The notes: generated by a model from the sequence alone, not told the origin. Positions 2,779-24,417 are shown, numbered from the stretch's first letter. The stretch is 30,470 nucleotides of DNA from Prasinococcaceae sp. CCMP 1430 (GCA_013416795.1 RQSC01001226.1:4613-35082), one strand, 5' to 3'. Numbers and translations: made by a program.

Positions 2779-3187
2779 CGCGCCCGGCGGCGAGCCCGCC
2801 GTTGAGGCCGAGGCCGCGCCGGCGCCGCCGGCGCCCAAGAAGGACAACTTCGATGACTTCTTCGCCTTCAAGTCGTGGGGCCCGGAGATCGTGAACGGCC
2901 GCCTCGCGATGCTCGGCTTCGTGTCGGGGGCCGCCGCGGAGATCACCTCGGGTGAGACCACCCTCTCGCAGTTCTCCGCTCACCACTGGGCGTTCGTGCT
3001 GGCGGCCGTGCTCTTCACCGCCGCGTCTTTCATGCCGCGCTTCCAGGGTGAGACCACCGCCAAGCCCGAGTCGAAGGAGAATGGCATGTGGAAGGCGTCC
3101 ACTGAGCTCCTCAACGGCCGCGCCGCCATGGTGGGCCTCTCCGCCATGTTCGTGCAGGAGGCCATCACCGGCAACCCCGTCTTCTAA
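2779..3187 (+). CDS. ELIP/CBR-like chlorophyll-binding stress protein, paralogue 2; start in or before the gap
   Basis: PEIVNGRLAMLGF ... TELLNGRAAMVG, collinear with paralogue 1, ends at TAA 3185-3187. Confidence 0.9.
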
Positions 3188-3565
3188 GCAGCGCGCGAGT
3201 GCAGCGCGTGGTTCTAAGGGACCAGCAGTACCATATGTCGACCGACGGCGCGAAGGAGAGAGGACCGCGCACCGAGTGCGCCATGCCCCACTGTAAACAT
3301 ATCACCATTATTGCAACCCACGAACATTCCGCTCACCGCGACCGATGCTCGCGCATTGCCGCACATTTACCAGCTCAGGCGCGCTCGGCGCGCGGGAGCA
3401 GCGCCCGGCGGGCTTGCCCCATTCGTCACCAACCCACAGACCCTTTCGGCACTGGCCTCCCCCAGTCGGGGCGCGTGGTGGCGAATGGCGGCGGAGCTGC
3501 CAAGTGCCGACCGGCGGTGACTCATCCGACGTCCATCACAGGCAAAAGCGGCAGAGCGGCGTGGC

Positions 3566-5445
3566 TCAGGGCGAGTGGGCGAGCGAGGCAGGGTCTTGCC
3601 AGGCCTCGAGTGGCTCTCGTGTCGAAGCCTCCTCCCCAGATGGCCTCTCCTCGCCTTCGTCGGCGTTTTCTGCGCCTCTCAATGGGTCCAGCGCATGCGC
3701 CCAAAACGGCGTCTGCAGTGGCCACATGAAGCGCAGCCGCGCGAAGTAGTGGAGGGCTTTGTCCCCGAGCACTTTTTCGCAGCGCTCAACCGCCGCCAGC
3801 AACTGGGGAGTAGGCTCCTCGCTCCAGCGCTTCTCCAGCGTGGTATAGCCCTCGGCACCGAGCGATTCCTCGTGGCGTTTGCATGCCTCCCAGTCGAGCA
3901 GCTTGAGTTTATAGGGCAGCGAGGACTTGACATCGCGAGCGAAGTACTCCGCGACCTGCCGCTGCCACCACCTCAGAATCGACGTGCCATTTTTGTGCAA
4001 GTACCTCCCTCGGCCGACGTACTGCCACAGCGCGGCGACCATTGAGCACGGGTCGGACAGAAAGAGCTCGAAAGGCATCAGGAACAGCCGCCCACAAGGC
4101 ACCGAGTGCGCCAGCAATTCCACGTTGGTGTACGCCACGGCTTGCTGTCTGAGCTCCAGCTCGAAGGCCGCATCTGAAAAGGGAGGCACCTCGGTCTCGA
4201 CGCTGTACCCGCTTTCGTTGTCCTTGCCGGAGACCGTTGTGTAGAAGCGCCCGAGATTGGAGAGGACGCTTCGCACCGGGTCCCTCGCCAACACAACGAA
4301 GAGCACGCGCGGATCGCGAAAGCGGTCCTCAAAATTATACGCCTTGCTCTCCGATCGCCACACGCGCTCGTACGGGTACATCTTGACGATCGTTCGGTCA
4401 GTGCGAGACAGGTAGCGCTAAAGGAGGCGTGAACGGGTGCGACTTGGTCAGCGCTCGCGCGTCCGTGAGCTGTCAAGTGTGGAATGCATGCGGTGCCGTC
4501 TGGGTTTGCTCGGCGGCCTGGTGGCCGCCACTCGAGCGCGTGTGCGCACTCGATGCCACTCATGCGCACGGGCGGGCGGGGACGAGACCCACACACCTGC
4601 CCGAACTTGCCATCAGCGCGGTAGTGGCCCCCGCGCACCCCCGCCTTCCCTTCGAGCCTCGAGGAGTACGGAAAGCTCAAAGTCTCGAGCACCGTCAGGT
4701 TGAGCTTGGCGAAGACCTGCACGGGTGCCTGCCACAGCACTCCGGAATTGAACGTCGTCATCTGCGAGAGTGCGCGCCGTCGCCGTCGCCGTCGCGCGCG
4801 TGGAGACGCGCGCGCAGTCCACAACGGTCGCAAGCGCGAGCGCGCGCGACGCGTGAGCACGCGGGGAACGTGCGGCGCCAGCATGCGAGCGCCCCAGGAG
4901 CGATGGCCCGCAAGCGCAGTAAGCGCTACTCAACAACTCACATGGTGTCCCGTGCCCTCTACGCCCATGACGGAGAGGCCCAGAGGCCCGCTCGCGGGCT
5001 CGCCGCGACGCCCGCCGTGGAGCGCGTGCCAGCCGAGCTGCCGCTGCTGCGCGGCACACAGGTGATGCTGCTCGAACAAACGCGTCGGCGAAGGCCGCGA
5101 GTCGCGAGCGGCTGCCTGCTGCTGCGCGCTGTTGCCATCATAGTATTCCTCGACCCGCGCCCAGTAGCGTTCGAGCGAGCACGCGGGCGTCTGTGACACA
5201 CCGCGAGGCGGCGCCCGCGCCTCGTCGCGCGCATTGCGGTGGCCGCCCGCAACGTCCGCATCTTGCAACCGCACCGCGTGCACGGCATGCCCCCCGGCTG
5301 TGCCATCGGACTCGTCCACTCCTCCGCGCTGGATCCCAAACGCGGTGCACACCGCCACCGCCACCCCCAGCGCCCACAGCGCCGCTGCCGCCGACGAGCA
5401 CGTCCGACTGCGGGCCCGGGCCCTGCCACGGGGTGGCTGCCCCAT
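3566..5445 (-). CDS. Type II membrane sulfotransferase-like (P-loop fold) protein, about 506 aa. Exons 5445-4942, 4761-4597, 4417-3566
   Basis: Two phase-0 GT-AG introns (4762-4941, 4418-4596). There is an N-terminal hydrophobic anchor (AAAALWALGVAVAVCTAFG), a putative 5'-PSB loop SVMGVEGTGHH and a 3'-PB motif FVVLARDPVRSVLS. The start codon is uncertain. Confidence 0.72.
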
Positions 5446-5607
5446 CCCACACCCGGCCCCCTGTGCGGCCCTCAGCCCCGCACCCCCTCCACCCCCCACC
5501 ACGCCCCCCTTTGAGAGCGCGCACAGTGTGGCCCCAGCGCCCTGTAACAGCCCAACACCAACAGCTTGCGCGCCTGCGCGCCAAGCAGCGGGGCCCAAGC
5601 GCACACG

Positions 5608-5656
5608 TACATGTACATTCAGTACCATCACGATTGGACTGAAGTACCATCGGTAC
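5608..5656. repeat. Degenerate member of the TACATGTACA / GTACCATCATGATGGTAC intergenic palindrome family
   Basis: TACATGTACA 5608-5617, GTACCATCACGATTGGAC 5622-5639, GTACCATCGGTAC 5644-5656. Confidence 0.5.
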
Positions 5657-5873
5657 ACCACTACCAGCACTTTAGTCGAACACTTTCGCTGACAGGCAAC
5701 ACTTGTGCAGGTGCAGGAGTAAGGAGCTCCATATTATAGTAGCGCGGGCGCAGCTGCGCCTCTTTCGCCCGGGCGAGCTTGCGTGCGCCCCTGCGCCCGC
5801 CCACCCGAGCGTGCGGGCGCCCAGGTCCTGCGCACAGCTTGCGCGAGGGATTGCCTCCGGTTCCACTGACAGC

Positions 5874-6719
5874 TCAGGCGTTGGGGTCCGCCTTGATCTC
5901 CCCCTTGCCACCGCCCTTGATGAGCCAGCTCGAAGACTGGATCTTGTCGCCGAGGCCGTCGAGCAGCGCAATGCCGAGCTTCTCGCAGACGGGCCTCTCC
6001 GGGATTGTGTTGTTGTTCTGGTCGCCGCCGTTGCAGAAATAATCGGGCGGCGGCGTGATGCACGCGATCGACCTGCAGCAAGTCCGGTCCTCATCGACGG
6101 CCACAAAGGCCTCGTCGACGCAACGCAGCGCCGCGACGATCTTGCAGCGCTCCGCTGCGGGCATGAACGGTTTGCCCTTCTTCAGCGTCGCCTGGTGGTC
6201 GTTGTTCACAATCACGATCAGGTGCGCGTTCTTGTCGCCACCCGCGGCCTCCTTGGACTTCTCGAGGTACTCAAGGTGGCCAACGTGGAAGGGGTCGAAG
6301 TAGCCCGACACCTGATGGCGGCGATGCGACGGGCGCGCGGAGGGTGACCAGCGCACGGCGAAACCCGCACCGCCGCCGCAGGAGCGCCGCAGGAGCGCCG
6401 CAGTGGCGGGGCGCGCAAAGCGGCGCGCGAGCGCGCATCGGATGCGCGCACGTCAGCGCCAAGCACTGCGAGCGGCCGCTCCGTCGTCATCGCGCTGTCG
6501 CACACTGCGAACGATATTCCCGCGCGCTGCGACCGCGCTGCTGGGCCAACGCCCCCTTCCCCGCCCCCCCCAGCAACCCCTAGCTGCTCTGCCGCGGTCG
6601 CGGTCTAGCGCGCCCCGCCGCCGGCCTACGCCACGCACCACGACGCGCTTCTTGCGCTCGGCGCCGTAGCCCGCTCCCACCTCGGCGCCAGTGTCTGCCA
6701 TCACCTTGGGCGCCACCAT
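5874..6719 (-). CDS. Cytidylyltransferase-like nucleotidyltransferase (HxGH family; glycerol-3-phosphate cytidylyltransferase/RfaE/RibL-like), 172 aa. Exons 6719-6639, 6311-5874
   Basis: The phase-0 intron 6312-6638 (GTGCGT...CATCAG) yields RVVVSGYFDPFHVGHLEYL. Further motifs are IVIVNND, KKGKPFM...ER, NGGDQ and KIQSSSWL. Confidence 0.9.
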
Positions 6720-7451
6720 CGCTGCCGTTGGCGGGGATGGGCGATTGGGAGGGGGGGGGAGGGGGCTGGGCGCGCGCGTGCGGGCAGGCGCACAGAGACA
6801 CGCATGTGGTGTGCGGTGCTCGTCCGCAATGCAGCGCGCGGGCCCGCCGCATGTATTCGTACTTTTGGTGGCTTCCGCTGCTGCCCTTTTCTCACGGCCA
6901 CGGCAAGATGATGGAAATTGGACAAGGGCGTGCTCACTTTGCGACCCGCACCAGTGTAATAAACTGAGCTCTGAAAGATCCACCCGTCCGGGACCATTTC
7001 ACGGAATCGAATCCTCTCAAATGGGTGGATTCCTCGAAACCCTTCGAGCCCCCCCTCATGCCACTCCCGCCCGCGAAATCCCCTCCCGCACACACCGCGC
7101 GCGGCGTGCGCGCGCGGCGCCCCCTCGCCCTTCCCCTGCCTTCCAGGTCGTTCCAGCACGGGAGCGCAGGAAGCCGCCCGGTGGTGCAGCCTCGGCGAGG
7201 GAGGCGAGAAGGCGGCGCGGCAGTGCGCGCAACTCCCACCGTTTCCACCCGTGTGTTGTGGTCAGCCGCGGGCGAAGGGGGGTTCGGGACGTGTGCGGCA
7301 GTTGCAGGCGAGGGCACCGACGCGTGCTCGGGCGGCGCGCGTCCGCGCAAGGGCTAGGGACGGGTGTGCATCGGCAGCAGCGGTGGGACGGGTGTGCATC
7401 GGCAGAAGGTGTCGAGAGGTCCGACGCCGCCGACTTCGAGGGTGATTGCGT

Positions 7452-8846
7452 ATGCTGCCAAGGGGAGCTGCGAGCAGGTCTCGTCGGGCGCTGCAGCCGG
7501 CGCTGCGGCAAAGGCATCGGCGTCTGCTGCTCGCGTTTGCTGCCGCGGTGGCGCTGCTGACGGCCGCGACGAGCCCGGGGCCTTGGTGGAGCAAATTTCT
7601 CACAACGTGCATAGAATGGGCGGATGGGTGGTCTTTGAGGAATTGGCAGGGGGTGAGTTTGCAGGGGGACGGAGCTCGCGAGGGGCTGTGGACAGAGCAA
7701 GCCATGCTGGAGAGCGAGAGCACCAGGGAGCGCGCCTTGTTTGAGAGCCGCCGAGCGCTGCTGTGCGACGCAGCGGCCGCAGAGAGGGCAGGTCTATCAG
7801 CACTACCAGCAGCTACGGACTGTGTCTGCTCTGGACTGCGGCCGTGCTTCGAGGACATCGGGGTCAAATTCTTCATCGCAGGCTTCCCAAAGTCGGGCAC
7901 AACACAACTGGTAGCTCTTTTGAATGAGCACGAAGGCACCAGCGTCCATCCGTTGATGGCAACGACTGAGCACCTGGATCTAAGCCTCTATGGACGTGTT
8001 GGACCGTCAAGAGGTCTCATTCCGAACGACAACGAGTCGTACTTCTTTCGCCCCTCGATGGCCGCGGGGAGGGACCCTATCGAGTTCATCTCGGCGCGCA
8101 AGCGTGAAGTTCATGACACAGTTGCTCGTGGAGCGCATCAGCAACTTCCTGTCGTCGGCATTAAAGACCCCGACATGGCGTACGATGCGGGTGCCGTGCT
8201 GCACGCAGCCTCAGTCCCCCGGAGCAAGGTCATTCTCGCAGTCCGAGACCCCCTCGACTGGATCGTCTCCTTCTACAACTATCGCCTCGAGGAGTATGAA
8301 TACATCCGGCCTGAGTGGCTTCGTGGCCCCGACGGCGACCTCCGGCATCCTGTGAGTTGTCCATCGGGAGTTCAGCACTCAGGGGAGTACCCGCCGACCT
8401 TCAGAGACATTGCTGCGGGCTGCTGTTGGGTCGGAGTGTGCCGCCATACCGGCGCGCAGATACGCCACATCATCGAGCAGAATGTGTTGACTGCACTGCC
8501 ACGAGAACGAGTGCTCCTGATAGATATGGACTCGCGCTTCCGCCACGACTCCTCCATGGTGTACGAGGTCCTGTCTAATTTTTTGCAGATTGGGACCATC
8601 GAGTTTAAGCACCACACCCATCGTGTGCGGCATAACGCCGCGATGGACGGGCATGAGGACCGCATCGTTGACATCTGCGCGGAGGAGCATCGTGAGGAGA
8701 GAAAGGCTCTGTGGTGTTTCTTCAGTGAGGAAGAAAGCCCGACTGACATTGCGTTTTACGATTCGCTCTCGCGTGGACTCATCGATCACCTCAACGATCC
8801 GCGCCCGTGCGATGAGACCATACATTGCGAGGAAAGAGCACGCTAG
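7452..8846 (+). CDS. Intronless type II membrane sulfotransferase (Sulfotransfer_1/3-like), about 464 aa
   Basis: N-terminal RRLLLAFAAAVALLTAA anchor, 5'-PSB FFIAGFPKSGTTQL, GIKDPDMAY, and 3'-PB ILAVRDPLDWIVSFYNY. Confidence 0.85.
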   Translation: MLPRGAASRSRRALQPALRQRHRRLLLAFAAAVALLTAATSPGPWWSKFLTTCIEWADGWSLRNWQGVSLQGDGAREGLWTEQAMLESESTRERALFESRRALLCDAAAAERAGLSALPAATDCVCSGLRPCFEDIGVKFFIAGFPKSGTTQLVALLNEHEGTSVHPLMATTEHLDLSLYGRVGPSRGLIPNDNESYFFRPSMAAGRDPIEFISARKREVHDTVARGAHQQLPVVGIKDPDMAYDAGAVLHAASVPRSKVILAVRDPLDWIVSFYNYRLEEYEYIRPEWLRGPDGDLRHPVSCPSGVQHSGEYPPTFRDIAAGCCWVGVCRHTGAQIRHIIEQNVLTALPRERVLLIDMDSRFRHDSSMVYEVLSNFLQIGTIEFKHHTHRVRHNAAMDGHEDRIVDICAEEHREERKALWCFFSEEESPTDIAFYDSLSRGLIDHLNDPRPCDETIHCEERAR

Positions 8847-9020
8847 CGGGGCTCATGGTGCTCTTGGATGTGAACGTCGCCGTTTACGGGCACCCTCAGC
8901 GAACGCAGCGATGTGCTCGCTGGAGACGCGCGGCCGTACGGCTATGGCGTTAAGCAGCGCAGCGCTCGCGCGCATTCTCACAAACAGCAGATACTCCCAC
9001 GAGAACCTTGGCACGACATC

Positions 9021-9058
9021 TACATGTACAGTGCATCATCATGATGGTACATGTACAG
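9021..9058. repeat. CATCATGATG palindrome core flanked by TACATGTACAG direct repeats
   Basis: TACATGTACAG at 9021-9031 and 9048-9058; CATCATGATGGTAC at 9037-9050. Confidence 0.65.
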
Positions 9059-9644
9059 CACGGCGACCTCCGGCATCATGTTGATTGTCCATCGGGAATT
9101 CAGCAGTCAAGGAAGTGCCCGCCGACCTTCCAAGAAATATGAAAGAGAGCACTTGGGTCGCAAAAAAACGGTGCCCTCGCTCTTCGTAGTGCAGCAACAG
9201 ACAGCTGTGATCTCCCAAGTATCAAAGCATATTTCGACTGCTCGCGTCAGGTACCCTGGCTGGGAGTCACGGGCCGCTGGTAGATCATCCTGGTCTGCTC
9301 CCAGGCCCAAGCGGCGGCCCATAGGACTAGAACACGGGACGGCACCGCAATCAACTCTCCACAAAGTGATCAATAGGAAAGCCGTCAGCGATAAAATCGG
9401 GAATAGGCGTTAGAGATTCGATTACGTGACGCCCTCATTGCTTGAGAATTTCTTGAAATATGTTGGCGCGCTGCCGCCCAGGTCCGCATCGCCCGGAGGC
9501 GAGACGTGTGTGCGACATCAGCTCGAGGTAATTGGCTTGCGGCGCGCGCTACAAGAGTTCAGCATTCGCTGCGCTGCAGAAGAATCGCCGCGTTGTCCAG
9601 GGCGCCCGGTCGGCAGCAACTCCGCGCTTCTTCAATGTGACCAC

Positions 9645-10230
9645 TCAGCTCTCCTGCCAGTCATTCCCATCACATCGCCAATGCATGTCCGGCGCAACGA
9701 ACTTGTAGAAGCCTTCATGGCCCTCGCTATGGAGCTCACATCCTGCCTTCCACGATTTGACGAAGCGGCTATCTTTGCGGAAGACGACCAGGTCATCGCC
9801 CACCTTGCTCACATGGTGATAGAGACCAGTCTGTGCCATGAAGTCGATAGTTTCCTGCTCGTGAGAGCACTCCACGAAGAATATGTCGATAATGACGGTA
9901 TGCAGGTCGATCGAGCGCAACACGTTGAGTTCAAGGCTCTCGACATCTAGAGAGAACACGTCCACGCGGGGTACCTCACCGAAGGCCTCCACGAGGCCAT
10001 CCTTGGGGGTGACGCATCTGATAGGGTATTTCGCCTTAATCTTCACAGTACCGTCTGCAATCAGCTGGTCGAAGCGTGCACGCTTGTCAGCATTCATGAA
10101 CTCCATGACGCTACTTTCTTGGTCGTATGGCTTCTCAAGCTGTACGAACTCAAATGTGCCGGTGTGCTGCCCATACGTAGCGGGTGGGTGGCCAGGGCGC
10201 ACGCGCGCATGCTTGACAACGCGGGCTGCG
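9645..10230 (-). pseudogene. FkbM/Methyltransf_21-like SAM methyltransferase, C-terminal half only (truncated gene, pseudogene or misjoin); 5' boundary approximate
   Basis: GTFEFVQL...YPIRCVT...PRVDVFSLDVESLELNVLRSIDLHTVIIDIFFVE matches the FkbM C-terminal pattern. No N-terminal GAxxG SAM-binding segment is visible upstream. Confidence 0.65.
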
Positions 10231-10394
10231 AACGCGCCGTGTATGAAGGCGCCCCTGGTCGTTGCAGTGACGGCGGCGTGGGTGGCAGCGGCGATGGTGG
10301 TGGGGAAGGTGGCAGTGGTGTCGATGGCGCAGGGGTGCACAGTCGTGCCGCAACGGTCGCCGGAGCCGCTCCACATAGAGTCGGCAGCCCCTTC

Positions 10395-13300
10395 ATGAGC
10401 GGAGATGGGATATTCTGCATGGCGGACGGCAGACTGCGCGAGCTCATGATCAGCAAGACACAAGCGCCCTTCCTCTCATCTGCGCTGGAGAGCAGAAAGC
10501 GCGACGCGCTTGAGACGCTTACGGGCTGCATGGGCGAAACGTCTCGCGAGGTTGGCTTCGAGTACGCGTTGTGGTCTTTCCTGCGTGAACTGGCGGGCAA
10601 GGCGGGGCCGAGGCCGCTGCGACCACTCGTCAGTCCCAAAGCGCCATTCGTGGAGAGCGTCTGCAGTGGTGGGTACGATCCTGTCGGCCTACAGTCACTG
10701 TATCCGAGCACGTACTTCGTACGCATGTCCTACTACGATCAGGTCGCTGCTCGTATGCAGCTCGAGGGGCTTGTCTACTACTACGATGAGGCCGCCGCTC
10801 TTACCCAGCTCGAGGGGCTTGTCGGCGAGAGCAAACGCTCCGGGCCTGTCGGAGGACGCAGGGCGGGTAGCACGTTGTGCCATGGAGACGTGGACGCGTT
10901 GAACTGGTCGGCACCTGACACGGGGGCGCCCAGCGGCCAAGAAGACGCGTCCTTGCTGCGCCATATGGTTTTTGAGGCCGTGCCGGCCGCTGGCGCGTGC
11001 GAGGATGATATGGTCATCCAAGTGGTCAGGGGCGATCTTGAGTCGTCGCTCACCCTGTGCATGCGCACGCCAGGCTGTGTTGGCGTGGCACATTCCAATG
11101 CTAGGAATGGCACGCGACTGTGCTACGCCCTGTCGCATTCCCGATTGCAGCCGAGTGCCGACCTACACAGGAGTGCAGCGGTGGGGCGTGAGGAGAGTTG
11201 GACGGTACTAGGCGTGCGGTCTTGCAAACATATGACCCAGAAGCTGGCTTTGATGAACCATGCCGCCGGCGTGTCTTCCAGGTGCGCTGCATCTGAGCTC
11301 GGTGACTTCACGTTGCTACGCACAAGTGTCTTGGCCGCTTTGGAGCTGCAGCAGAGCCAGTCGTGGAGTTGCTGGAGGGCGAGCGCTCCTCATATGGTAT
11401 CCTCACTTGCGCGCTCTTGCGCTGATTACCAGATGTGCTCAATCTTCATGCAAAATGACGCAGGCGTCGGTATGATGTGCTCAGCGAGCTCATCGCGCTT
11501 CGCCGAGGCCTATCGCGGCAACAGAAAGCCGGTATGTCTCAGCGCAGGTGCGCTGGGAGAGGGCTGGATCTTAGGCTGCAAGCGCGGCGAATCATTCTGC
11601 TCGCTCGCCCAGCAGCGAGGTGCCTCCGAAATTGCATCAGACCTCCTGTACCGCGAAATGCGGGCGGGCGAGCGCAGGCCGATGGACGTTGCCAAGGGCA
11701 CACTTGCCTGTGTGGAAACACTGGCAGAAGTGATCACCCCGAGCGTCTCTGAGGCGAGCACATTCTGCTCTGTCGAGCCGCTCTGCACGGCTTTCGTGCG
11801 CAACGCTGGATCCAAGGCGACATCGTTCTGTCAAGGTTACAAGAAGCTGGCTCTGTCGCCGCTAGATGCGGAGTTCCATGCAGGCATCAAGGTGGGCTGC
11901 GAGTCGTATATTGCTCGTGATGCGAACCCGGATGTCCAGCGTGGCAGCGCACCAGGTTGCGCCGCAAGCTGGGGGGGCGCAATCAGCTGCACAGCTGCGC
12001 GCGTGCACGTGCCGATGACTTCTACGCGGCCGCTCTTGCCACACACTGTGTGCGCCGACTGCCCCGACAATGCCGTTTGCCCGGCTCTACGCACTGTTGG
12101 TGCCCCTGTAGACGCACCAGGATACGCTCGGACGCTTGATGACGCGGCGAAGCGCATGATGGCCGAGGGCGGGAGCGCGGTGAATTTCAACGCTGGCGCG
12201 ACAAACCCGTCGGTGGTGAGCATGGGCAACGAGTGGTGGGCCGTGCTTAGGACGACCGACGCTCTGCGATGCGCAGGCGATACCATCGACGGCACTTTTG
12301 AATTGGATCGCAGAGGACGCCGTCAGTACATCTCGCGTATTGTGATGTGTCGGCTCAGTGGTCCAGATGCGCTCGACCAGCCCTATGCGTGCCGCATGCT
12401 CCCACGCCTGCGCCAGAGTATGGTCGTCAATCTGAAGGATGGGTACACGATTGACAACGGCCTCTTCGCTGGCGAGGAGGACGCGCGCGCTTTCGCGGTC
12501 GGCGATACCATGTACACCTTGTTTAATGTGGGCATTATTTTGCCCGAGTCTGACCTGGATGACCTGCAGCTCAGCCGCGGCGAGAAGATCTCAGTGCGAC
12601 GCATGGTGCTCGCGACGGTTGATGTCAACACGGCCACCTACACAACGGCGGTACTCGTCGAGATTCCCGACACGCACCTGCTTGACGACGTGAAGAATCT
12701 GATACCTCTTGTGCGCGAGCACGGGAACGTCGCGCTCGTGCACTCGTGGTCGCCATTTGCCGTGTGCTCGCTCACCTTAAGAAGTGGCGCGTGTACAGCA
12801 GAGAGGGTGTCGGACGAGACTGGCTTTTTGAACGCCGGAGGCACCGGCCATGGCCCGTCGTACAGTGGCAGCACGCCGCTTGTACGCGTGCCACAGGGCT
12901 ATCTCGGTCTCGTGCACAGCAAGGCGCAGATGGAGCTTGGGCGGCTCTACAGCCACGCGTGGGTGCTTGTCTCGCACGCGTCGCCGCACCACACGCTCTT
13001 GTGGAGGTCTCCGTCCTTCCGCCTGCCAGATGTTGACGCAAGCTTCCGTGTCAAGGCGGGCTCGAGCACGGAGACCTTCAGGGTGCTTGGGGACATCCAG
13101 TTCGCTGCCGGGCTGGTGGTAGATGTGGCTTCGAGCACCGCTACCGTTACGTACGGCGTCCAAGACTGCATCTCTTGGATTGCGCGGGTGCCTCTACCTG
13201 CTCGCGCGCTCGGCGGGGGCGGGCCCGGGAGTCCGTCCAGCGCCGCGGAGTCATTCATGCACACGCTGAAGCCCGTGCACGATGGCGCCACGCCATCGCG

Positions 13301-14456: not shown

Positions 14457-14555
14457 AAGCTTTGCCATTCAGCCTGAGATACAGAGAGCAGGGCGGGTGG
14501 CCAGACTCGTATGGGGGCAATCTGGAAGACCGAATCTATGAAGACATACGGTACT

Positions 14556-14573
14556 GTACCATCATGATGGTAC
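14556..14573. repeat. Perfect 18-bp palindrome GTACCATCATGATGGTAC between convergent genes
   Basis: Read directly; 100 nt after the + strand stop at 14456 and 195 nt after the - strand stop at 14768. Confidence 0.8.
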
Positions 14574-14617
14574 GTGCACAAGCGGTGGAGCTTGGCTAAG
14601 CGAATGCAATTTGATTT

Positions 14618-14722
14618 TTACATTTCCGTGCCGGCTTTTCCATGCAAGAATCACGTTGGCAGTGTTGCGTTTTTAGGTCAAAATGAACCAGCGCTGGCGG
14701 GGTGCTGGAGCGTATCTTGTAA
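14618..14722. terminator. Putative UGUAA-type polyadenylation signals for the convergent pair (TTACA 14618-14622, TGTAA 14718-14722). Similar TGTAA at 3292-3296 and 20300-20304
   Basis: Each lies downstream of a stop codon on the matching strand. UGUAA is the known chlorophyte signal, but a 5-mer is weak evidence. Confidence 0.3.
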
Positions 14723-14767
14723 TTGTATTGTTCGTGTGTGGTGGTCTCGTTGTGGCAGTCGCTCAGG

Positions 14768-15882
14768 TCATGAATGAAATTGCCTGACTGCCCAGTGATA
14801 GAGGATAATGTCGTCGGCGTTGTGCTGGACAATTGCGTGCTTGATGTCATCGCGAAGCAGGTCAAAACCTGTGTTCCCTCGCGTCCTGTGTGAGTGTTTA
14901 GGCTTAGCTGTGCGTGTCAACCCAAAGAGAGCCTCCCACGCATTCAAGGTAGGGATCATGTCATCCAGAAAGCCGACCCCATCAAAGCCCAGAAGAGTGT
15001 TCTTGGCACTCTCCAGGTCGCACGGGTGCCAATCTGCGCCGTCGAAGGCGCGCATGTAAAGATCAGTGAACTGTATACACATGCCGTTGTGGAGGCCGAA
15101 GTGTCGTCCTGGCCTCAACTCATGCCCATGGATATCCTCGCGTGTCCAATCTTTGCAAGGGCCAGCGCTCGAGCGGTGCCCTCCTCCTCTGCTCGGGCTG
15201 ATGCAGTCGATGAATGTGTCGTCATCCATGCCCGGGTATGTATAGTACCGCAGCGAAGTGACGAGATCGAGGGGCTCGCGAAGCACAGTCCACTCCTGGC
15301 ACTTTCGCTGAAAGCCCGCCACGCGCAGCTCTTCCAGCAGCTGACCATCCGTGTAGTTGGGTCCAAAGTGGCCCATGATCACGTCAGCGTCCTCGAGCAT
15401 CACACGCTCTGGGAAACCCACAGGCCGGTCGCTGGGCGGCGCAAGGAAGGCCTGGTCTGTCCTTGAGCTCGGGTAGTGGGTCCAAAGCTTGAGACCACGA
15501 TCAACAAACCACTGGTGCAGCGACATGCCGCCACTCTTTGGCACGTGATACCTGCGCAAGGCGTGGCATTGGTGTGGTGCGGTTGTGTGCGAGAGACGCG
15601 TAGGGAGCGGACGATTGCTGCGTCAGCACAGTCGTGGTCGTGGCGGGCAGCCACGCCCTCAGCCCTGCTTCGTCACTGGTACCGGGCGGCCTTTGGCAAC
15701 GTCCACCCTGTCCGCACGCACATGATGATGCAGGGCTTGCTCGTTGTCTGCTCACGGTCCGCCTGATCGGACCCAATAAGCAAGCTTCGCGATGCTTCCG
15801 TCGTACGAACGTGAACAGCTCCTGCAAGCATCACCAGCGCCGCTGCTGTTGCAACAAGGGCGCGCCGGTAGCCTTGCCGCAT
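14768..15882 (-). CDS. Type II membrane sulfotransferase (Sulfotransfer_2/Gal3ST-like), 314 aa. Exons 15882-15722, 15551-14768
   Basis: The phase-2 intron 15552-15721 (AT|GTGCGT...CGCAG|G) gives KPCIIMYHVPKSGGMSL (5'-PSB). Also TVLREPLDLVTSL (3'-PB) and an N-terminal anchor RRALVATAAALVMLAGAV. Confidence 0.88.
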
Positions 15883-16372
15883 GGCGCACGCGCGCGATCG
15901 GCCCGTCGCGGTGCCGCAAACGCCCCCTGCGACCCGTGCGCAGCACCAGCAAGGCCACGACCAGAAGCGTTGTGTTGTGCAGCAGGAACATGCGCGAGCT
16001 CGGCGTCAGAGACTGCGAGAGTGCGCGCCGGGGCCCGCAGACCCTGCATCCCTCCCCCGCGCACGAGACACAGGCGCCTGGCGGAGCGACGCGGGCGCGA
16101 AAATGCGTCCACGCGCGGCCGTGCGCTGCACGGCCCTTAGGTTTCCTCGCTGTCCGGCCGCGCACGCCACCCGCAACACCCCTCATGCCCCTCGCCCTCA
16201 CACGCTCATCCTTGCGGCCACATGCACGCACCTCCCACCGGCGAAGGAGGTTGTCACACGTCCGCGGTTTGGCAGCGTGATCACCACCACGTTGCTTTCC
16301 GTCCAGCCAGCGCCCGTCGCGGGGCCGGGAGATTGGAATGCGTGCAACCCTCTAGCTAGAGAAGATACCGCG

Positions 16373-16515
16373 CGCCCAGCCGCGGCTGGGCGGGTGTAGC
16401 CCGGAGGGGTGTGCCGGGTGGCGGAGCCGAGCGCGCGAAAAACCTAGCTAGCCCCCGCTCTAATTTTTTTTTTCTTTTTAGAGAGTGTGCCGGAACAGTA
16501 CAGTATATTGTACTG
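16373..16515. repeat. Two 20-bp palindromes and a poly-T tract in the long divergent intergenic region
   Basis: Perfect CGCCCAGCCGCGGCTGGGCG at 16373-16392; CAGTACAGTATATTGTACTG (one mismatch) at 16496-16515; T-run at about 16464-16479. Confidence 0.6.
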
Positions 16516-17210
16516 CAGTGTACCCTGCCTTGATGCCTGAAAGTCACTTTTACGGTAAAACACTGTTATTTTTGATCTAAAATGCTGCTGATTGTCCTCC
16601 CAGTGGGTGACCACTTGGCCCCTCAGCTACAGATGTCTCCAAAAAAATCGTTCGCCTCGCCAGGCGCATTTACGCCCGCCTAAAAGTCGTTACAGCGCGC
16701 GCCGCTTGGCCAGGGCGCCCAGTTGTGCCCGCGCTACTTGCGCGCAGTAGGAGTGACCTCGATAGGCCATTCGTAAAGGCGTTGGGTCGTATCAAATTCA
16801 GTTGCAAAAAAGTGCGTTTTGCCGTTTATGCGGCAAAGTCGACTATGAAAGGCAATGGGACGCGGCGCCGCCGGAAGCGCCTCGCCGCCCTGGCCACGGC
16901 GTCGCAGGGATGGGCAGAGAGCGGCTACCGCCGCGGGTAGCGCCCTCCTTTCGACGCACGGCGCATGCGCACCCACAAGCGAGGGCCGCCACAAGAAGCA
17001 CAGCGCTGCGCGCGGGCCGTGCTGCTGCGCGATCCGCACGTGCCCGACGCGCTGCCGGCGCTGCCGCACAGCCGCGCGACTCCAAGCTACACCTGCAGCA
17101 GCCCGATCTGCGGGACGGCCGCTGCCTCCCACCCACAGAGTCGGCTCCCCGCTCCTTTCCGCCCTGTCATGGGCACGCCGTGCGCGGTGCGGCGGCCCTG
17201 CCGCGAGGCC

Positions 17211-20200
17211 ATGGCTTCGGTGCGAGTGGGCGCGTGGGGGGCAAGCCGGGCAGGGCGCACGCGCATGGTGCCCGCACTCATGCTGGCGCTGGCAGCGTTC
17301 GCAGCCCTGCCGCCAGCGGCGGGTGCCAACGCGCCTGCGCAGGAGCGGGTGCACGCCCAGGCACATACTCAGACGCTGGCCACAGATGCAGCGGGTGGCG
17401 CAAAGGCAGGAGGCAAGGCACGCAGTGCTGCGGCTGCCACCGCAGCCACTGCCGCCGATAGTCTCGACGTCTTTGCCGACCACATTGGCGCACTCGGTGA
17501 CAGCCGCGCCTCAGGAGTCGGCGTGGCGACCCATGAGAGCGCAGGGGTCCTCCACGCAGGCGCCATGCACTCAGGCCACGCCACCCACGACCCAGGCTCG
17601 GGGCTGATGAGTGCGCACTCCGCTGCTGGAGCGACCGGGGGCGCAACCGCAGGCGCGGGCGCTGCTGTCGGGGCCGCGGGCGCTCCGTTTGCTGGTGCAG
17701 CTGTTGGCGCAGTGAAGTTGGGTGCTGCAGCTCATGCGGAGGCGGCCTTGTCAGCGGCCTTAGAATTGAACGAGTCGCCTAGGCAGCTTCTGCCATTCCT
17801 GGAGCCGACGCGCGCTGGCGGCTGGGTCGCTCTGTCGCATCACGCGCTCCACGCGCTCAGCAGCACCGTTGAGGTGCAGGTCGGTGAGCCAGACGCGTCG
17901 GCGCGCATGGTGGTGAGCTTCCTCGGCGGCTCGGGTGCGCGCACTCGCGCCCTCATGCGAGCGGTCTTGGCTCGCTTGCCCACACGCCCAGCGAGCACGG
18001 CCACCTCGGCGGATCGAGCTGCGTTCGAGGCACTGCGGGCGGGGGGGCTTTCGCTGGGCGCGCTTTCTCCGGATCACGGCTCGGAAGCCTACTCGGAGGT
18101 GCCGGAGCTCGATTCGCCTGGGAGTACAGTGGAGGATCCCGTGGACCCGGCCGTGATCGCTTCCTTCGATCCCGTGTGGCGTGTCCTGGGCGACCCTGAG
18201 ATGGATAGCCACGTGCTTGCGTTGATGGCGGAGGTGAGTCTCCCCGACCTGTACGAGCAGGGCGGCGGCGGGCTTGCTGCCAACTACCGAGGAGCAGCAC
18301 TCGCGATCTCGAACGTCGTTGTGCTCCACGTCAGTTACCGCAGCAGACTGGACACTGTTGCTCTGCGGGCAGTCTTTGAGCAGATGCGTGCCACCAGCGA
18401 GCGCATCGGCCTCGTGCAGGGAGTGGCAACCAGGATGCAACAGCAGGGGCAGCTTATACTGGTGATTGAGGCCGATGAGCAGTCGGCTGACGGTGTCAAT
18501 GTGCGTTCTGTCTCCCATGAGGTGTCGCAGCTGATGTTTGAAACGTTCTCACCAGGTGGTGGCGAGTCCCCCTTTTGGCTCACGCGCATCTTCGTGCTGC
18601 ACGGGCAACCCGTCGACTCAGTGGCCGCCAAGCTGACAAGCACCCTCAAGTCCATGAGTGAAATGGTTTCGACTGACGCGGACTCCGTTGAAAGCCTCGG
18701 TGAGCTCTTGGACGTGCAATTGCATGCAGGGCAGCCAGTGCCCCTGAGCTCGCAAACTCTGGCATTCGGCAATGGCAGGCTTTCGTTTCTTCAAGGCGCC
18801 GAGGTTGATGCTTTCGACTCGATGGCAGTGTACCTCCATGGCAAGGGCAGTGCGATACTCCAGTCCGAAATAAGAGCGCACCTGACCGCAGTCTCGACAG
18901 CCGTGCTTACGGATTTTCGAGTGTTTGGTGAGATATATGCCTTGCTTGACGAAGGCGTGGGGCAGGTCGCGCGACGCCAGTACGAGGAGTTGAGGGATCA
19001 GCTCGACCAGAGGGTGGTGCATGCCTCGGCAGATCTAAAGTTGTACGTGTCTACAGATGTGCGCACCTTGGTGCAGGGCGCCTTCGACGATCTGGCCACG
19101 GCGCTCGATACAGCACGGGCCAATGTGGCAAAGAGTGACAAGAAGCAGCGCGATGGTAAGTGCTGCGCCCCGGGTATCGCATACGCGTACAATGAATTTA
19201 AGGAGGTGGTCGACCAGCAGCAATCATTCGCAATGGAGCGCATACATACCGCATGCACCAGGCATCGCGGGCGCTGCGGTGGTGCCGTCGACGCGGAGAA
19301 TTTGGGGCGGCTCGTCGAGGCAGCCAAGATGGAGGTGGACATAGTCGTGCAAGAAAATCTCAGGCACAACATTGCATCGGTCTTAGGGGAAGTCGAAGCC
19401 CGTGTCAACGAAGCTGCGAAAGACTACGTGGAGCGGGCGATTGTCGGCGACGGCACGGCCAAGGCGCCCGGATTCGGTGAGCTTAAGGCCGCGTTGGTAG
19501 GTATCCACAAATGGAACAACTTGACGCCCGAGCTTGAGGACGAGGCACGTGCTCGGGTCCGGCGGGTGACGTCTTCGCTCGCGACGTACATCAAGGTACC
19601 AGACCAGTGGCACGAGGTACTCAAGGAGGTTGAGGAGTTGAAGCTTGCAGCGACGGTGCAGCTCGCCGAGGCTGGCAAGCACCCCTCTTCCCATGCCAAG
19701 GAGCAGGAGGCGATAGCTGCTCACGTCGTCTACAGCCTGCGTGAGGACGTCGCGGAGATATCAGAGACCTTTGATAGGATTCTGGAGCCCATGTCACTCC
19801 TCAACGAAGTGAGGGACCATTTCAAGAGCGAGCTGCAGGCATCTCTGTCAACAGTAGAGAAGGAGGGTCGCGCGGCCGTTGCGAAACGGGTCATCGAAGT
19901 ACAGAGGGAGGCACGCGTAGCCGGTTTCAAGATGCTGAAGCAGGCCGCCCGTCCGGTGGTTGACTCTTCGGATCCGCTGTCTCTTGGGAGGGCCTTTCTG
20001 CAGCGCGGTGACATGGTGCGCGAGGCGTTGGCGGCTGCCCTGCAAAGCCTGAACGCCACGGCGCTCGAGTTGGGCATCCCCTTCGACAAGGCTTTCTTTA
20101 CGCGCGAGGCCAAGCGCCTCCAAGAGGAGGCCGACGACAAATTCAGGGTGTATAGCCGTGGGCTAAGTGTGTCGTTGGCCATGCTCTTCGTGGGGATGGC

Positions 20201-20264
20201 ATATCATTGCTACACGTATCTCCGCTCCCCGCCGACGCTGGCAGCTCAGCGCAAGCAGAGGTGA
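17211..20264 (+). CDS. About 1017-aa intronless membrane protein: signal-like N-terminus, Ala/Gly/His-rich linker, degenerate RHD3/Sey1 (atlastin-like) GTPase domain, long helical region, C-terminal TM helix
   Basis: The long ORF is clearly coding. Segments VVSFLG, ALAISNVVVLHV, LRAVFE and LILVI fall in RHD3/Sey1 order, but G1, G3 and G4 residues are lost. The TM is GLSVSLAMLFVGMAYHCYTYL. The confidence value is for the family call. Confidence 0.55.
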   Translation: MASVRVGAWGASRAGRTRMVPALMLALAAFAALPPAAGANAPAQERVHAQAHTQTLATDAAGGAKAGGKARSAAAATAATAADSLDVFADHIGALGDSRASGVGVATHESAGVLHAGAMHSGHATHDPGSGLMSAHSAAGATGGATAGAGAAVGAAGAPFAGAAVGAVKLGAAAHAEAALSAALELNESPRQLLPFLEPTRAGGWVALSHHALHALSSTVEVQVGEPDASARMVVSFLGGSGARTRALMRAVLARLPTRPASTATSADRAAFEALRAGGLSLGALSPDHGSEAYSEVPELDSPGSTVEDPVDPAVIASFDPVWRVLGDPEMDSHVLALMAEVSLPDLYEQGGGGLAANYRGAALAISNVVVLHVSYRSRLDTVALRAVFEQMRATSERIGLVQGVATRMQQQGQLILVIEADEQSADGVNVRSVSHEVSQLMFETFSPGGGESPFWLTRIFVLHGQPVDSVAAKLTSTLKSMSEMVSTDADSVESLGELLDVQLHAGQPVPLSSQTLAFGNGRLSFLQGAEVDAFDSMAVYLHGKGSAILQSEIRAHLTAVSTAVLTDFRVFGEIYALLDEGVGQVARRQYEELRDQLDQRVVHASADLKLYVSTDVRTLVQGAFDDLATALDTARANVAKSDKKQRDGKCCAPGIAYAYNEFKEVVDQQQSFAMERIHTACTRHRGRCGGAVDAENLGRLVEAAKMEVDIVVQENLRHNIASVLGEVEARVNEAAKDYVERAIVGDGTAKAPGFGELKAALVGIHKWNNLTPELEDEARARVRRVTSSLATYIKVPDQWHEVLKEVEELKLAATVQLAEAGKHPSSHAKEQEAIAAHVVYSLREDVAEISETFDRILEPMSLLNEVRDHFKSELQASLSTVEKEGRAAVAKRVIEVQREARVAGFKMLKQAARPVVDSSDPLSLGRAFLQRGDMVREALAAALQSLNATALELGIPFDKAFFTREAKRLQEEADDKFRVYSRGLSVSLAMLFVGMAYHCYTYLRSPPTLAAQRKQR

Positions 20265-20498
20265 CACGTGTCGCTCGGGAGCTCGATCATTCTCAGGGGT
20301 GTAAATCTGACAAATTCCGACAGTGCGGGAGGTACCGAGGGCAGGCGCTCGCCGTGTGTGGCGGCAGGTGCCGGGGGCAGCGCGGCCGCACACTGAGCGC
20401 TAGCTAGGGATGAGTCGTACTGCAAATGTGTCTTTTTGAATCGTTACCCTCGAGCTCCCAAAAACGCGTTCTGTGGCGCCGGGCCACGTCCATTTACT

Positions 20499-20514
20499 TA
20501 CCATCATGATGGTA
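20499..20514. repeat. Perfect 16-bp palindrome TACCATCATGATGGTA
   Basis: Read directly; 235 nt after the stop at 20264. Confidence 0.8.
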
Positions 20515-20958
20515 GGTGACGAAAAAGTGACATCCCCCAACTGCGGCTTTTTTTTTTCACGGCCGCCACCATTTTTTTAAACCAAGATTCCGAGCGCCCG
20601 GGGCGCATACTGCGGCAAGCGCTTGGAAAATGCCTGGGCCCTCCATGCTCCAGATACATAACTTCGAAAAGTCTTGTGTGCGCGTGCGGCGTCCGTAAAA
20701 GGCGCCGCGGAAGCGCGGTGACGTGGCGCGAGCGGGCCGCCGCCTGGCGCTGTTTGAGGTGCGGAGGGGGGGCGGGGAGAGGGTGCCGCCCTGCCCCTTC
20801 CTTCTTCCCCGACTCCCCCTCCTTACCCCTGACAACCACCCGCGTCGGCCCGCCCCCCCTCCCCCTCCCCTGAGCCCCCCCTTCATCCATCCCCTGGACC
20901 TCCCGCCCGACACCCCGCGTGCGCGCGCGCGCCGATCGTCGGCCTCCCGGCCGCCGCC

Positions 20959-22209
20959 ATGCAGCGCCTGCGCTGCGTGGCGCAGAACTACGCATGGGGG
21001 CGGCGTGCGGCCGAGGGCAGCGCGGTCGCGCGCCTCGCCGCCGCACAGGCCGGCGAGGCCGCCGATGGCGCCGCGCCGTACGCCGAGCTGTGGATGGGCG
21101 CGCATCCGAGTGGCATGAGCACCGTCGCCGACGGCGGCGTGCCGCTCGCCGAGTGGATCGAGAGCTTTCCCGGTGGCGCCGCTGCCGCGCTGGGCGAGGC
21201 CGTTGCCAAGCGGTGGGGTGGTAAGCTGCCCATGCTCTTCAAGGTGCTGAGCGTCGCCAAGGCGCTCTCCATCCAGTCGCATCCGGATAAGGCACTCGCG
21301 GAGCGCCTCCACGCCGAGCGGCCAAACGTGTACAAGGACGACAACCACAAGCCCGAGATGACGCTCGCGGTGGAGCCCTTTGAGGCGCTCTGCGGCTTCG
21401 TGGCGCATGAGGAGCTGCGCGCAGCGCTGGCAGCGACGCCCGAATTCGCCGAGGTAGTGGGCGCCGAAAATGCCGCCGCGGCTGCTGCCGCAGCCGGTGA
21501 CGCCGATGCAGAAACCGCCGCGCTCAAGGCGTGCTTCGCGGCAGCGATGACCGCCGTGGACGACGTGCGCGTGCGCACGATTCGCGCGCTGCGCGCGCGG
21601 CTGGCCGCTGCGCCCGAAGGGTCGCTGTCTCCCAAGGAGCGGCTCTTCCTCCGGCTCTACGAGCAGTATCCAGATGATATTGGCACGATGGCCGTGTTCT
21701 TCCTCAACTTCGTCACGCTCGAGACGGGCGAAGGACTGTATCTGGGTGCCAACGAGCCCCACGCGTACTTGTCTGGGCAGTGCGTCGAGTGCATGGCGAC
21801 CTCGGATAATGTGGTGCGCGCGGGACTGACTCCCAAACTTCGTGACACGGACGTGCTGTGCTCGTCGCTCACGTACCGCACGGGTGCGCCGCACGTGCTG
21901 CGGGGCGAGGCCGTCGACGCGTGCAAGCGCCTCTACGCGGTCCCCGCACCCACTGACGAATTCGAGGTCGCGGCGGTCACCGTCGCGCCTGGTGGCACGT
22001 ACGATCTCGCCCCCAACGCGGGCCCACAGCTGGTGCTCGCGTTCGGCGGCTCTGGCATCGCTGCGCCCGTCGGGGGCGAGCCGCTTGCCGTCGGGGAGGG
22101 TGCCGTCTTCTTCGTGCCCGCGGGCGTCGCCGTGGGCCTCACGGCTGCTGCTGGTGACGCCGCGCTCGTGCTCTACACCTGTGCTGTTAGCAGCCGCGTT
22201 TTCGAGTGA
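20959..22209 (+). CDS. MPI: Mannose-6-phosphate isomerase, type I, intronless, 416 aa
   Basis: YAWG, YAELWMGAHPS, LPMLFKVLSVAKALSIQSHPDK, YKDDNHKPEM, EPHAYLSG, ECMATSDNVVRAGLTPK. Confidence 0.97.
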   Translation: MQRLRCVAQNYAWGRRAAEGSAVARLAAAQAGEAADGAAPYAELWMGAHPSGMSTVADGGVPLAEWIESFPGGAAAALGEAVAKRWGGKLPMLFKVLSVAKALSIQSHPDKALAERLHAERPNVYKDDNHKPEMTLAVEPFEALCGFVAHEELRAALAATPEFAEVVGAENAAAAAAAAGDADAETAALKACFAAAMTAVDDVRVRTIRALRARLAAAPEGSLSPKERLFLRLYEQYPDDIGTMAVFFLNFVTLETGEGLYLGANEPHAYLSGQCVECMATSDNVVRAGLTPKLRDTDVLCSSLTYRTGAPHVLRGEAVDACKRLYAVPAPTDEFEVAAVTVAPGGTYDLAPNAGPQLVLAFGGSGIAAPVGGEPLAVGEGAVFFVPAGVAVGLTAAAGDAALVLYTCAVSSRVFE

Positions 22210-24233: not shown

Positions 24234-24284
24234 NNNNNNNNNNNNNNNNNNNNNNNNNNNNNNNNNNNNNNNNNNNNNNNNNNN
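24234..24284. other. Assembly gap (51 N)
   Basis: Run of N next to a C-rich tract. Confidence 0.99.
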
Positions 24285-24417
24285 NGCGCATGCGCGGGCC
24301 CGCGCCCCCCACCCGCGCGCGGCGCGTCCGGTTTTGGCCCATGCGGGCGCCCCTGCGCCGCGCCGTTCCCCGAGCGCATGCGGAGACGCATCCCGCGGGC
24401 ACGCCAGGCGCTGCGCA

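Follow-up and report, generated by a model that had tools for sequence, protein, structure and literature searches.

A lower-GC neighbourhood of candidate glycan-tailoring genes in Prasinoderma coloniale, with a deletion across the methyltransferase and glycosyltransferase genes of strain CCMP1413

Introduction

Do adjoining carbohydrate-related genes on an algal chromosome form a pathway for one glycan, and is that pathway still whole in the sequenced strain? The question is raised by a 30,470-nucleotide stretch of DNA (GCA_013416795.1, RQSC01001226.1:4613-35082), here called the window and numbered from its first letter, which is nuclear DNA of high guanine-plus-cytosine (GC) content from the marine green alga Prasinoderma coloniale, strain CCMP1413. 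A preliminary description of the window had proposed that seven of eight consecutive genes between 3566 and 22209 act on carbohydrates or their precursors, and that they resemble an operon-like locus for a sulfated, possibly methylated, mannose-containing glycan. The genes are present where that description placed them, and its account is largely accurate and can be confirmed in part; two of the seven, a nucleotidyltransferase and a phosphomannose isomerase (PMI), may be simple neighbours whose membership of a cluster is doubtful. We consider it reasonably probable that the window contains a genuine group of neighbouring genes for glycan tailoring in the secretory pathway, set in a lower-GC, structurally variable block spanning roughly 13 kb, that its wild form could serve a glycan pathway, and that the core pair of this pathway, an FkbM-type methyltransferase and a two-domain glycosyltransferase, is dead in CCMP1413.

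The published CCMP1413 genome comprises 25.3 Mb at 69.8% GC (mean 0.698), with 7,139 genes and 83 glycosyltransferases (PMC7455551). Sulfotransferases are unmentioned in that paper, which gives the wall chemistry as unknown, and its supplementary tables contain no sulfotransferase or gene-level data (PMC7455551).

One deletion truncates both core genes

The evidence that bears most directly on the state of the locus comes from wild relatives. TARA scaffold L001 is collinear with window positions 2779-14511 at 97.7% identity and carries an additional 3,104 bp at 10168/10169, where the window shows a junction with GTGCT microhomology. This additional DNA holds exon 1 of the FkbM gene, with its membrane anchor and the start of the S-adenosylmethionine (SAM)-binding part, ~1.8 kb of intergenic DNA between the divergent genes (the promoter region), and the first ~198 codons of the glycosyltransferase, with start codon and membrane anchor. 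In L001 the FkbM gene is a full two-exon gene with an anchor, and removal of its GTGCGT...AG intron restores the sequence FEPNRDLFEQ. The window has lost exon 1 and the first ~11 codons of exon 2; it retains profile positions 89-163 of the 173 in Methyltransf_21 (PF05050), that is, the C-terminal half, and holds no complete FkbM domain with an N-terminal SAM-binding part. The preliminary description had read this gene as an FkbM-like methyltransferase remnant, correctly, and the deletion explains the truncation.

The glycosyltransferase is affected in the same way. Its wild form is a protein of 1628 amino acids (P0031, P0044, and P0046), whereas the open reading frame (ORF) of the window lacks the first ~198 codons and, by hydropathy, any anchor. 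Over the remainder the two forms are nearly the same, with 3 of 1,428 residues differing from the closest wild copy. One codon stands out within the GT4 domain: positions 14064-14066 read CAG (Gln) at the first Glu of the EX7E motif, so that the region is SQGFGLGIFEAM in the window and SEGFGLGI(F/V)EAM in all wild copies and in relatives of 80% and 37% identity. No relative down to 37% identity, the seven wild variants included, departs from this Glu, and the motif is intact in the wild form and disrupted in the window copy.

The intact arrangement was found on TARA scaffolds L001, L003, and L007-L009, from five TARA samples. Three intact scaffolds match the window at 99.3-99.7% identity, so the deletion is confined to the CCMP1413 lineage. 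Over 7400-13399, the part of the window to which the comparison of assembled contigs (rather than reads) was confined, contigs from two DNA projects, of 2020 and 2024, cross the junction form and show no differences; the later project probably represents mutation-accumulation lines of the same strain (PMC11884799). Assembly collapse was considered as the source of the deletion and rejected, since two sequencing projects assemble the same junction. In two further assemblies, probably of RNA, contigs cover the sulfotransferase gene ST2 with its 3' region (7400-9406) and none lies on 9407-13399, where the FkbM and glycosyltransferase genes are found. ST2 is still transcribed in CCMP1413, the RNA nature of these assemblies being a guess on our part.

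The ratio of nonsynonymous to synonymous substitution (dN/dS) between window and wild relative is 0.13-0.40, which indicates purifying selection, and derived replacements are no commoner on the window branch (17 versus 21). Together these values indicate that the loss is recent and that the genes are constrained in nature. A microhomology-mediated deletion of 3,104 bp has thus cost both core genes their 5' ends and the promoter region between them, and the Glu-to-Gln change in EX7E would add to the loss. To judge from its sequence, the methyltransferase-glycosyltransferase pair is almost certainly non-functional in CCMP1413; the intact cluster that the preliminary description implied is not what this strain carries, as one deletion 5'-truncates both genes.

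A predicted beta-propeller joined to a GT4 domain

The preliminary description had named the truncated glycosyltransferase a fusion of a propeller and a GT4 domain, and both parts were recovered. The GT4 domain is well supported by Pfam (E 1e-16; PF00534 60.9 bits and PF13692 61.6 bits, above threshold), and the region ahead of it has no Pfam family match. An AlphaFold2 model of this region, built from a 37-sequence alignment with a predicted local distance difference test (pLDDT) score of 86.9, adopts a five-bladed beta-propeller, and its top 37 Foldseek matches in the PDB are all GH130 beta-mannoside phosphorylases or synthases, or the GDP-mannose-dependent GT108 mannosyltransferases of Leishmania (E 7e-10 to 1e-6; template modelling (TM) scores 0.5-0.6). 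An exhaustive profile search gathered 76 propeller relatives, many of them fused to GT4, the most distant of which match PF12141 (BMT, fungal beta-mannosyltransferases) under the cut-off. Within alignment A3 the Asp of an ED(A/P)R motif is invariant and the Arg nearly so; this Asp may correspond to the catalytic Asp of GH130, GT108, and GT91 enzymes. By structure the modelled propeller thus belongs to a set of enzymes all active on beta-mannosides, in keeping with the mannose idea, and the model is the only direct pointer to mannose at this locus.

Exact look-ups of the truncated product of the window found no match, and EukProt, UniRef, and MMETSP contain no protein in the 90% cluster of the fusion. 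A GT4 domain fused to an FkbM domain occurs in a protein of another organism (P0037), and by analogy such fusions fit the idea of a methylated glycan.

Three further observations concern the fusion and its relatives. The ORF contains a tandem duplication of 46-48 nucleotides at 10730-10823 (YYDQVAARMQLEGLV / YYDEAAALTQLEGLV), the first copy of which is missing in the 80%-identical relative P0032. A 5.5-kb Logan contig (L004, SRR29950796) consists of a full-length orthologue (1679 amino acids, 80% amino acid identity) and short flanks, and so resembles a transcript from a further Prasinoderma-like species; in that case the fusion would be expressed there in its intact form. A distant propeller-GT4 relative, P0051, lies on the minus strand of a metagenome contig (L010, 3127-5385) tail to tail with a GT32-type gene (Gly_transf_sug, DXD).

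Three sulfotransferase-like genes of different families

Three sulfotransferase-like genes with N-terminal anchors, designated ST1, ST2, and ST3, flank the core pair, as the preliminary description had proposed. By sequence one is a firm member of the class (ST2) and two are weaker candidates (ST1 and ST3). ST2 scores above the Pfam cut-offs for both Sulfotransfer_3 (E 4e-8, 34.2 bits against 27) and Sulfotransfer_1 (E 3e-6, 27.2 bits against 22), carries both PAPS motifs, PKSGTT (5'-phosphosulfate-binding, 5'-PSB) and RDPLDWIVS (3'-phosphate-binding, 3'-PB), and is present as an exact 464-amino-acid sequence in MMETSP/UniRef. ST1, looked up through its ORF 3566-4381, is an exact match to EukProt PRCOL_00000233 and UniRef A0A7R9TQU0 (proteins P0017/P0018), and alignment of the transcript-derived protein by tblastn places its exons at about 5475-4936, 4764-4549, and 4417-3566. 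Its language-model (atlas) features score 0.96 to chlorophyte Sulfotransfer_1 (PF00685) clusters, and it carries the 3'-PB motif RDPVRSVLS. The features of ST3 score 0.96 to Sulfotransfer_2 (PF03567) clusters, and its motifs read HVPKSGG and REPLDLVTS. Splice sites read from the sequence predict a first exon at 15882-15722, an intron at 15721-15552 (GTGCGT...CAG), and a second exon at 15551-14768. A single hydrophobic N-terminal anchor occurs in ST1 (residues 30-48) and in ST2, and the first exon predicted for ST3 encodes one as well.

BLASTP found no similarity among the three proteins, so they are not tandem duplicates, in agreement with the non-paralogy asserted earlier. PDB sequence searches with ST1, ST2, and ST3 gave no matches, and word-based protein searches with ST2 and ST3 returned near-identical Prasinoderma sequences only. 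Downstream of ST2, a 79-nucleotide direct repeat (9060-9138 versus 8332-8410, 85% identity) places a 26-codon piece of the ST2 coding sequence in its own 3' region (tblastn E 1e-6), and may be a relic of partial duplication.

A lower-GC block with structural variants

The block from 7.5 to 20.5 kb is poorer in GC than its surroundings, at 0.55-0.62 (8-15 kb and 18-20.5 kb) versus 0.68-0.72 in the flanks. Third-codon-position GC (GC3) shows the same difference, with 0.67-0.72 for the genes of the block versus 0.78-0.88 for ST1, the nucleotidyltransferase, and PMI, and the genes inside the block are intron-poor. The lower GC and the scarcity of introns between 7452 and 20264 noted in the preliminary description are thus upheld. 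Its operon-like layout is not, because gene orientations alternate along the neighbourhood.

The block also differs between lineages beyond the deletion described above. In L001, 2.35 kb with ST3 (window 14512-16861) is swapped for ~2.0 kb of unrelated DNA in which no genes can be recognised. A chimeric scaffold was rejected as the source of this replacement, since Logan contig L013, from an independent data set, has the same junction. The linkage of ST3 to the other genes is therefore not conserved in the L001/L013 lineage, and the enzymes need not be adjacent. Relatives that show gene context are those at least 97% identical to the window; more distant ones lie on contigs too short to reveal neighbours.

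A palindrome of 14-16 nucleotides, (T)ACCATCATGATGGT(A), occurs in three copies in the window versus 0.05 expected. All three lie within the low-GC block in 3' regions, 100-240 nucleotides past a stop codon, with unconserved flanks. The copy at 14558 sits 47 nucleotides from the L001 synteny break, and wild scaffold L009 is missing a piece of ~80 bp that contains this copy. Possible roles for the palindrome are those of a 3'-end signal, a cis element that the genes share, and a fragile site.

A shared glycan or chance neighbours

The wild form of the locus would bring together five type II membrane enzymes within about 12 kb, namely the three PAPS-type sulfotransferase-like proteins, the FkbM-type methyltransferase, and the propeller-GT4 protein. 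Its two-domain glycosyltransferase, divergent from the methyltransferase, would combine a GH130/GT108-like beta-mannoside propeller with a retaining GT4, and the set would most likely serve to build and decorate, in the Golgi, a glycan of the cell surface or mucilage that contains mannose and is partly methylated and sulfated. We infer that the enzymes share a substrate, and for the wild form a common sulfated, methylated, mannose-containing product is a plausible hypothesis. The shared-glycan interpretation of the preliminary description thus keeps its basis in adjacent, non-paralogous, mostly anchored enzymes of a low-GC block and in a propeller that fits mannose, and loses the intact state of the cluster and the fixed linkage of ST3.

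The capsulan of Prasinococcus, a related alga, is sulfated. A passage in PMC5066984 that cites Sieburth et al. (1999) refers to capsulan as a capsular polysaccharide reported from Prasinococcus. With the GT4-FkbM fusions found elsewhere, capsulan makes a mannose-containing, methylated, sulfated surface glycan a reasonable reading.

Several observations weigh against a working glycan neighbourhood of this kind. ST1 matches Sulfotransfer_3 at E 0.003-0.012 (16-18 bits), under the Pfam cut-off of 27, and its 5'-PSB loop reads GVEGTGHH with no evident lysine; ST3 has no Pfam match. PMI, with a GC3 of 0.82, is sited outside the low-GC block and is housekeeping-like. ST3 is unlinked to the glycosyltransferase in a lineage 97.7% identical to the window. 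The missing RNA contigs over the core pair are a weak sign of silence, the Glu-to-Gln base was seen in the window sequence and is unconfirmed in independent assemblies or reads, and the excess of sulfotransferases over chance is conditional on their number in the genome.

This last point decides how well the strongest competitor fares, a chance neighbourhood in which sulfotransferase and glycosyltransferase genes are so many that unrelated ones adjoin and in which low GC reflects low expression or recombination. Permutations over the 7,139 genes asked for any 8-gene run with at least three sulfotransferases, with or without one of the 83 glycosyltransferases. For 25, 60, and 120 sulfotransferases in the genome, the probability of such a run is 0.004, 0.076, and 0.47, respectively, and of one that also holds a glycosyltransferase 0.0003, 0.009, and 0.048. 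The clustering emphasised in the preliminary description is therefore unlikely by chance (P<0.08, or <0.01 with the glycosyltransferase) if the genome has 60 sulfotransferases or fewer, but not if it has about 120, although the probability with a glycosyltransferase in the run stays below 0.05 genome-wide up to that number. The variable linkage of ST3, the alternating orientations, and the generic nature of PMI and the nucleotidyltransferase also suit a chance neighbourhood, whereas the divergent pairing of methyltransferase and glycosyltransferase, whose domains are fused elsewhere, does not. We regard chance as a possible but rather unlikely explanation.

Could the block instead be foreign, a piece of a polysaccharide locus transferred from bacteria or a giant virus? 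Its GC and GC3 fall below those of the flanks, its long genes are single-exon, the closest named matches of the GT4 domain are bacterial cell-wall glycosyltransferases (37-38% identity), and most of the feature neighbours of ST3 come from bacteria, one cluster being viral. The feature neighbours of ST1 are chlorophyte, however, and dozens of long, multi-domain proteins are related to the propeller-GT4 architecture, one of them encoded beside a GT32-type gene. All five enzymes have eukaryotic type II anchors, FkbM and ST3 contain spliceosomal introns with the same GTGCGT donor, and the GC3 of the block, at 0.67-0.72, is still high. A viral source in particular was rejected, since IMG/VR viral contigs contain no relatives of the fusion or ST3 and matches to phage records are limited to the generic GT4 domain (22-28% identity). 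Because of the introns, the anchors, the blank viral scans, and the high GC3, a foreign origin is unlikely, and we give it little weight.

That all seven genes act together in CCMP1413, with the ORF complete from an internal start at 10395, is very improbable: the frame 10169-14456 is open over 4.3 kb with in-frame ATGs and selection between lineages is of the purifying type, but the start codon, anchor, ~198 codons, promoter region, and SAM-binding half of FkbM are lost, the EX7E Glu is replaced, and no transcript contigs (on 9407-13399) or annotated protein were found for the fusion.

The reading of a glycan-tailoring neighbourhood with a dead core pair has practical consequences. It supplies candidates, namely the two-domain propeller-GT4 transferase, the methyltransferase, and the three sulfotransferase-like genes. 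The reference strain would be a natural knock-out of a core pair that wild populations retain, so glycan analyses of CCMP1413 may overlook a polymer made by wild cells, and the contrast between CCMP1413 and a strain whose locus is whole would provide a ready genetic test of the pathway hypothesis.

Gene inventory and neighbouring genes

Table 1. Features of the window, with positions numbered from its first letter.
Feature	Position	Strand	Structure or basis
ST1, sulfotransferase-like type II membrane protein (PRCOL_00000233)	3566-5475	-	Three exons
Cytidylyltransferase-fold nucleotidyltransferase ORF, 160 codons	5874-6356	-	PF01467, TIGR00125
ST2, sulfotransferase	7452-8846	+	Single exon; Sulfotransfer_3/Sulfotransfer_1
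Palindrome ATCATCATGATGGT, one mismatch	9035-9048	.	ST2 3' region
FkbM methyltransferase remnant, confined to most of exon 2	9645-10168	-	Methyltransf_21
Deletion junction 10168/10169, GTGCT microhomology	10164-10173	.	blastn and base-by-base comparison with L001
Propeller-GT4 fusion ORF, 1,428 codons, 5'-truncated	10169-14456	+	Pfam, wild alignment
Five-bladed beta-propeller domain, GH130/GT108/GT91 type (predicted)	12087-13244	+	AlphaFold2 and Foldseek
GT4 (GT-B, Glycos_transf_1) domain	13287-14453	+	Pfam
Palindrome ACCATCATGATGGT	14558-14571	.	Between convergent glycosyltransferase and ST3 genes
ST3, Sulfotransfer_2-like	14768-15882	-	Atlas features, motifs
Membrane protein without family, 1099-codon ORF open from 16965	17265-20264 (predicted protein)	+	Hydropathy
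Palindrome ACCATCATGATGGT	20500-20513	.	Downstream of family-less membrane protein gene
Type I phosphomannose isomerase (PMI)	20959-22209	+	Single exon; TIGR00218, PF20511

The remaining genes of the neighbourhood (Table 1) are less easily tied to a glycan. The nucleotidyltransferase matches CTP_transf_like (PF01467, E 5e-14), contains an HxGH motif, and has as its closest solved chain the human ethanolamine-phosphate cytidylyltransferase (3elb, E 2e-11). It scores 50 bits with TIGR00125, above the cut-off, and 57 bits with RfaE domain II, well under the cut-off of 181. The cytidylyltransferase fold given in the preliminary description is thus confirmed, but no specific equivalog profile was reached. 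The gene is under constraint (dN/dS 0.15 versus the wild relative). Its ORF has no in-frame ATG ahead of the HxGH motif, so an upstream exon is likely, perhaps in 6218-6505.

PMI is identified by TIGR00218 (222 bits versus a cut-off of 116) and PF20511 (E 3e-43), and its exact sequence is present in EukProt. The 1099-codon ORF has by hydropathy an N-terminal hydrophobic segment (signal or anchor) and, by eye, an extended helical region and a C-terminal part that is hydrophobic; it matches no Pfam or NCBIfam family, and exact protein look-ups of several of its possible starts gave no match. No tRNA genes or Rfam families were detected in the window. Runs of N (assembly gaps) lie in the flanks at 2116-2332, 2720-2778, 22657, and 24234-24285, one of them within an ELIP-like gene, and none falls in the core genes.

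Comparison with known systems

Bacterial polymannose O-antigen loci, such as those of Escherichia coli O8/O9a (wbdA-D, manB/manC), encode multi-domain GT4 mannosyltransferases and a chain-modifying methyltransferase, with mannose-supply genes nearby. They form an operon of co-directional genes with an ABC transporter and are not known to include sulfotransferases. The window genes are instead monocistronic and eukaryotic, with introns, Golgi-type anchors, and alternating orientations.

At the level of the protein, the middle domain of the fusion is predicted to share its five-bladed propeller fold with GH130 enzymes, the Leishmania GT108 mannogen transferases (MPT/MTP), and the fungal GT91 beta-1,2-mannosyltransferases. 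Unlike in these enzymes, the propeller here has no Pfam match and belongs to a membrane-anchored protein in which Cys-rich modules and a GT4 domain are fused to it.

Eukaryotic precedent for a physical cluster of non-paralogous genes devoted to one secreted polysaccharide is provided by the galactosaminogalactan genes of Aspergillus fumigatus, which are co-regulated and genetically required. The window genes likewise adjoin and are non-paralogous, and are known here from sequence alone.

The closest algal parallel is the small outlier chromosome of the Mamiellales (for example chromosome 19 of Ostreococcus tauri), which has lower GC, is rich in genes for glycosyltransferases, methyltransferases, sugar metabolism, and membrane proteins of the cell surface (Yau et al., 2016; PMC5082852), and shows rearrangements and deletions between lines (PMC5082852). 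Glycan gene clusters in lower-GC regions of picoalgal genomes have thus been described already (PMC5082852), and the statement of the preliminary description that such loci are rarely described in algae was too strong. The block resembles this chromosome in its lower GC, its glycosyltransferase and methyltransferase genes, and its structural variation. It differs in being a block of ~13 kb within what appears to be an ordinary chromosome region of an alga from another phylum, as the gene number PRCOL_00000233 suggests without proving, and in having sulfotransferases as its main class; a link to virus resistance and block-wide expression switching form no part of the evidence here. We speculate, as an unlikely but interesting extension, that the block could be a small, fast-rearranging Prasinodermophyta counterpart of the Mamiellales 'viral immunity' chromosome. 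Pressure from viruses or grazers on a cell coat that is sulfated and methylated and contains beta-mannoside would then maintain its presence/absence variants, the exchange of ST3 in one wild lineage and the loss of the methyltransferase-glycosyltransferase pair in CCMP1413, and the 16-nucleotide palindrome would be a common cis element or breakage hotspot. If this is true, variable glycan-gene islands extend beyond the Mamiellophyceae.

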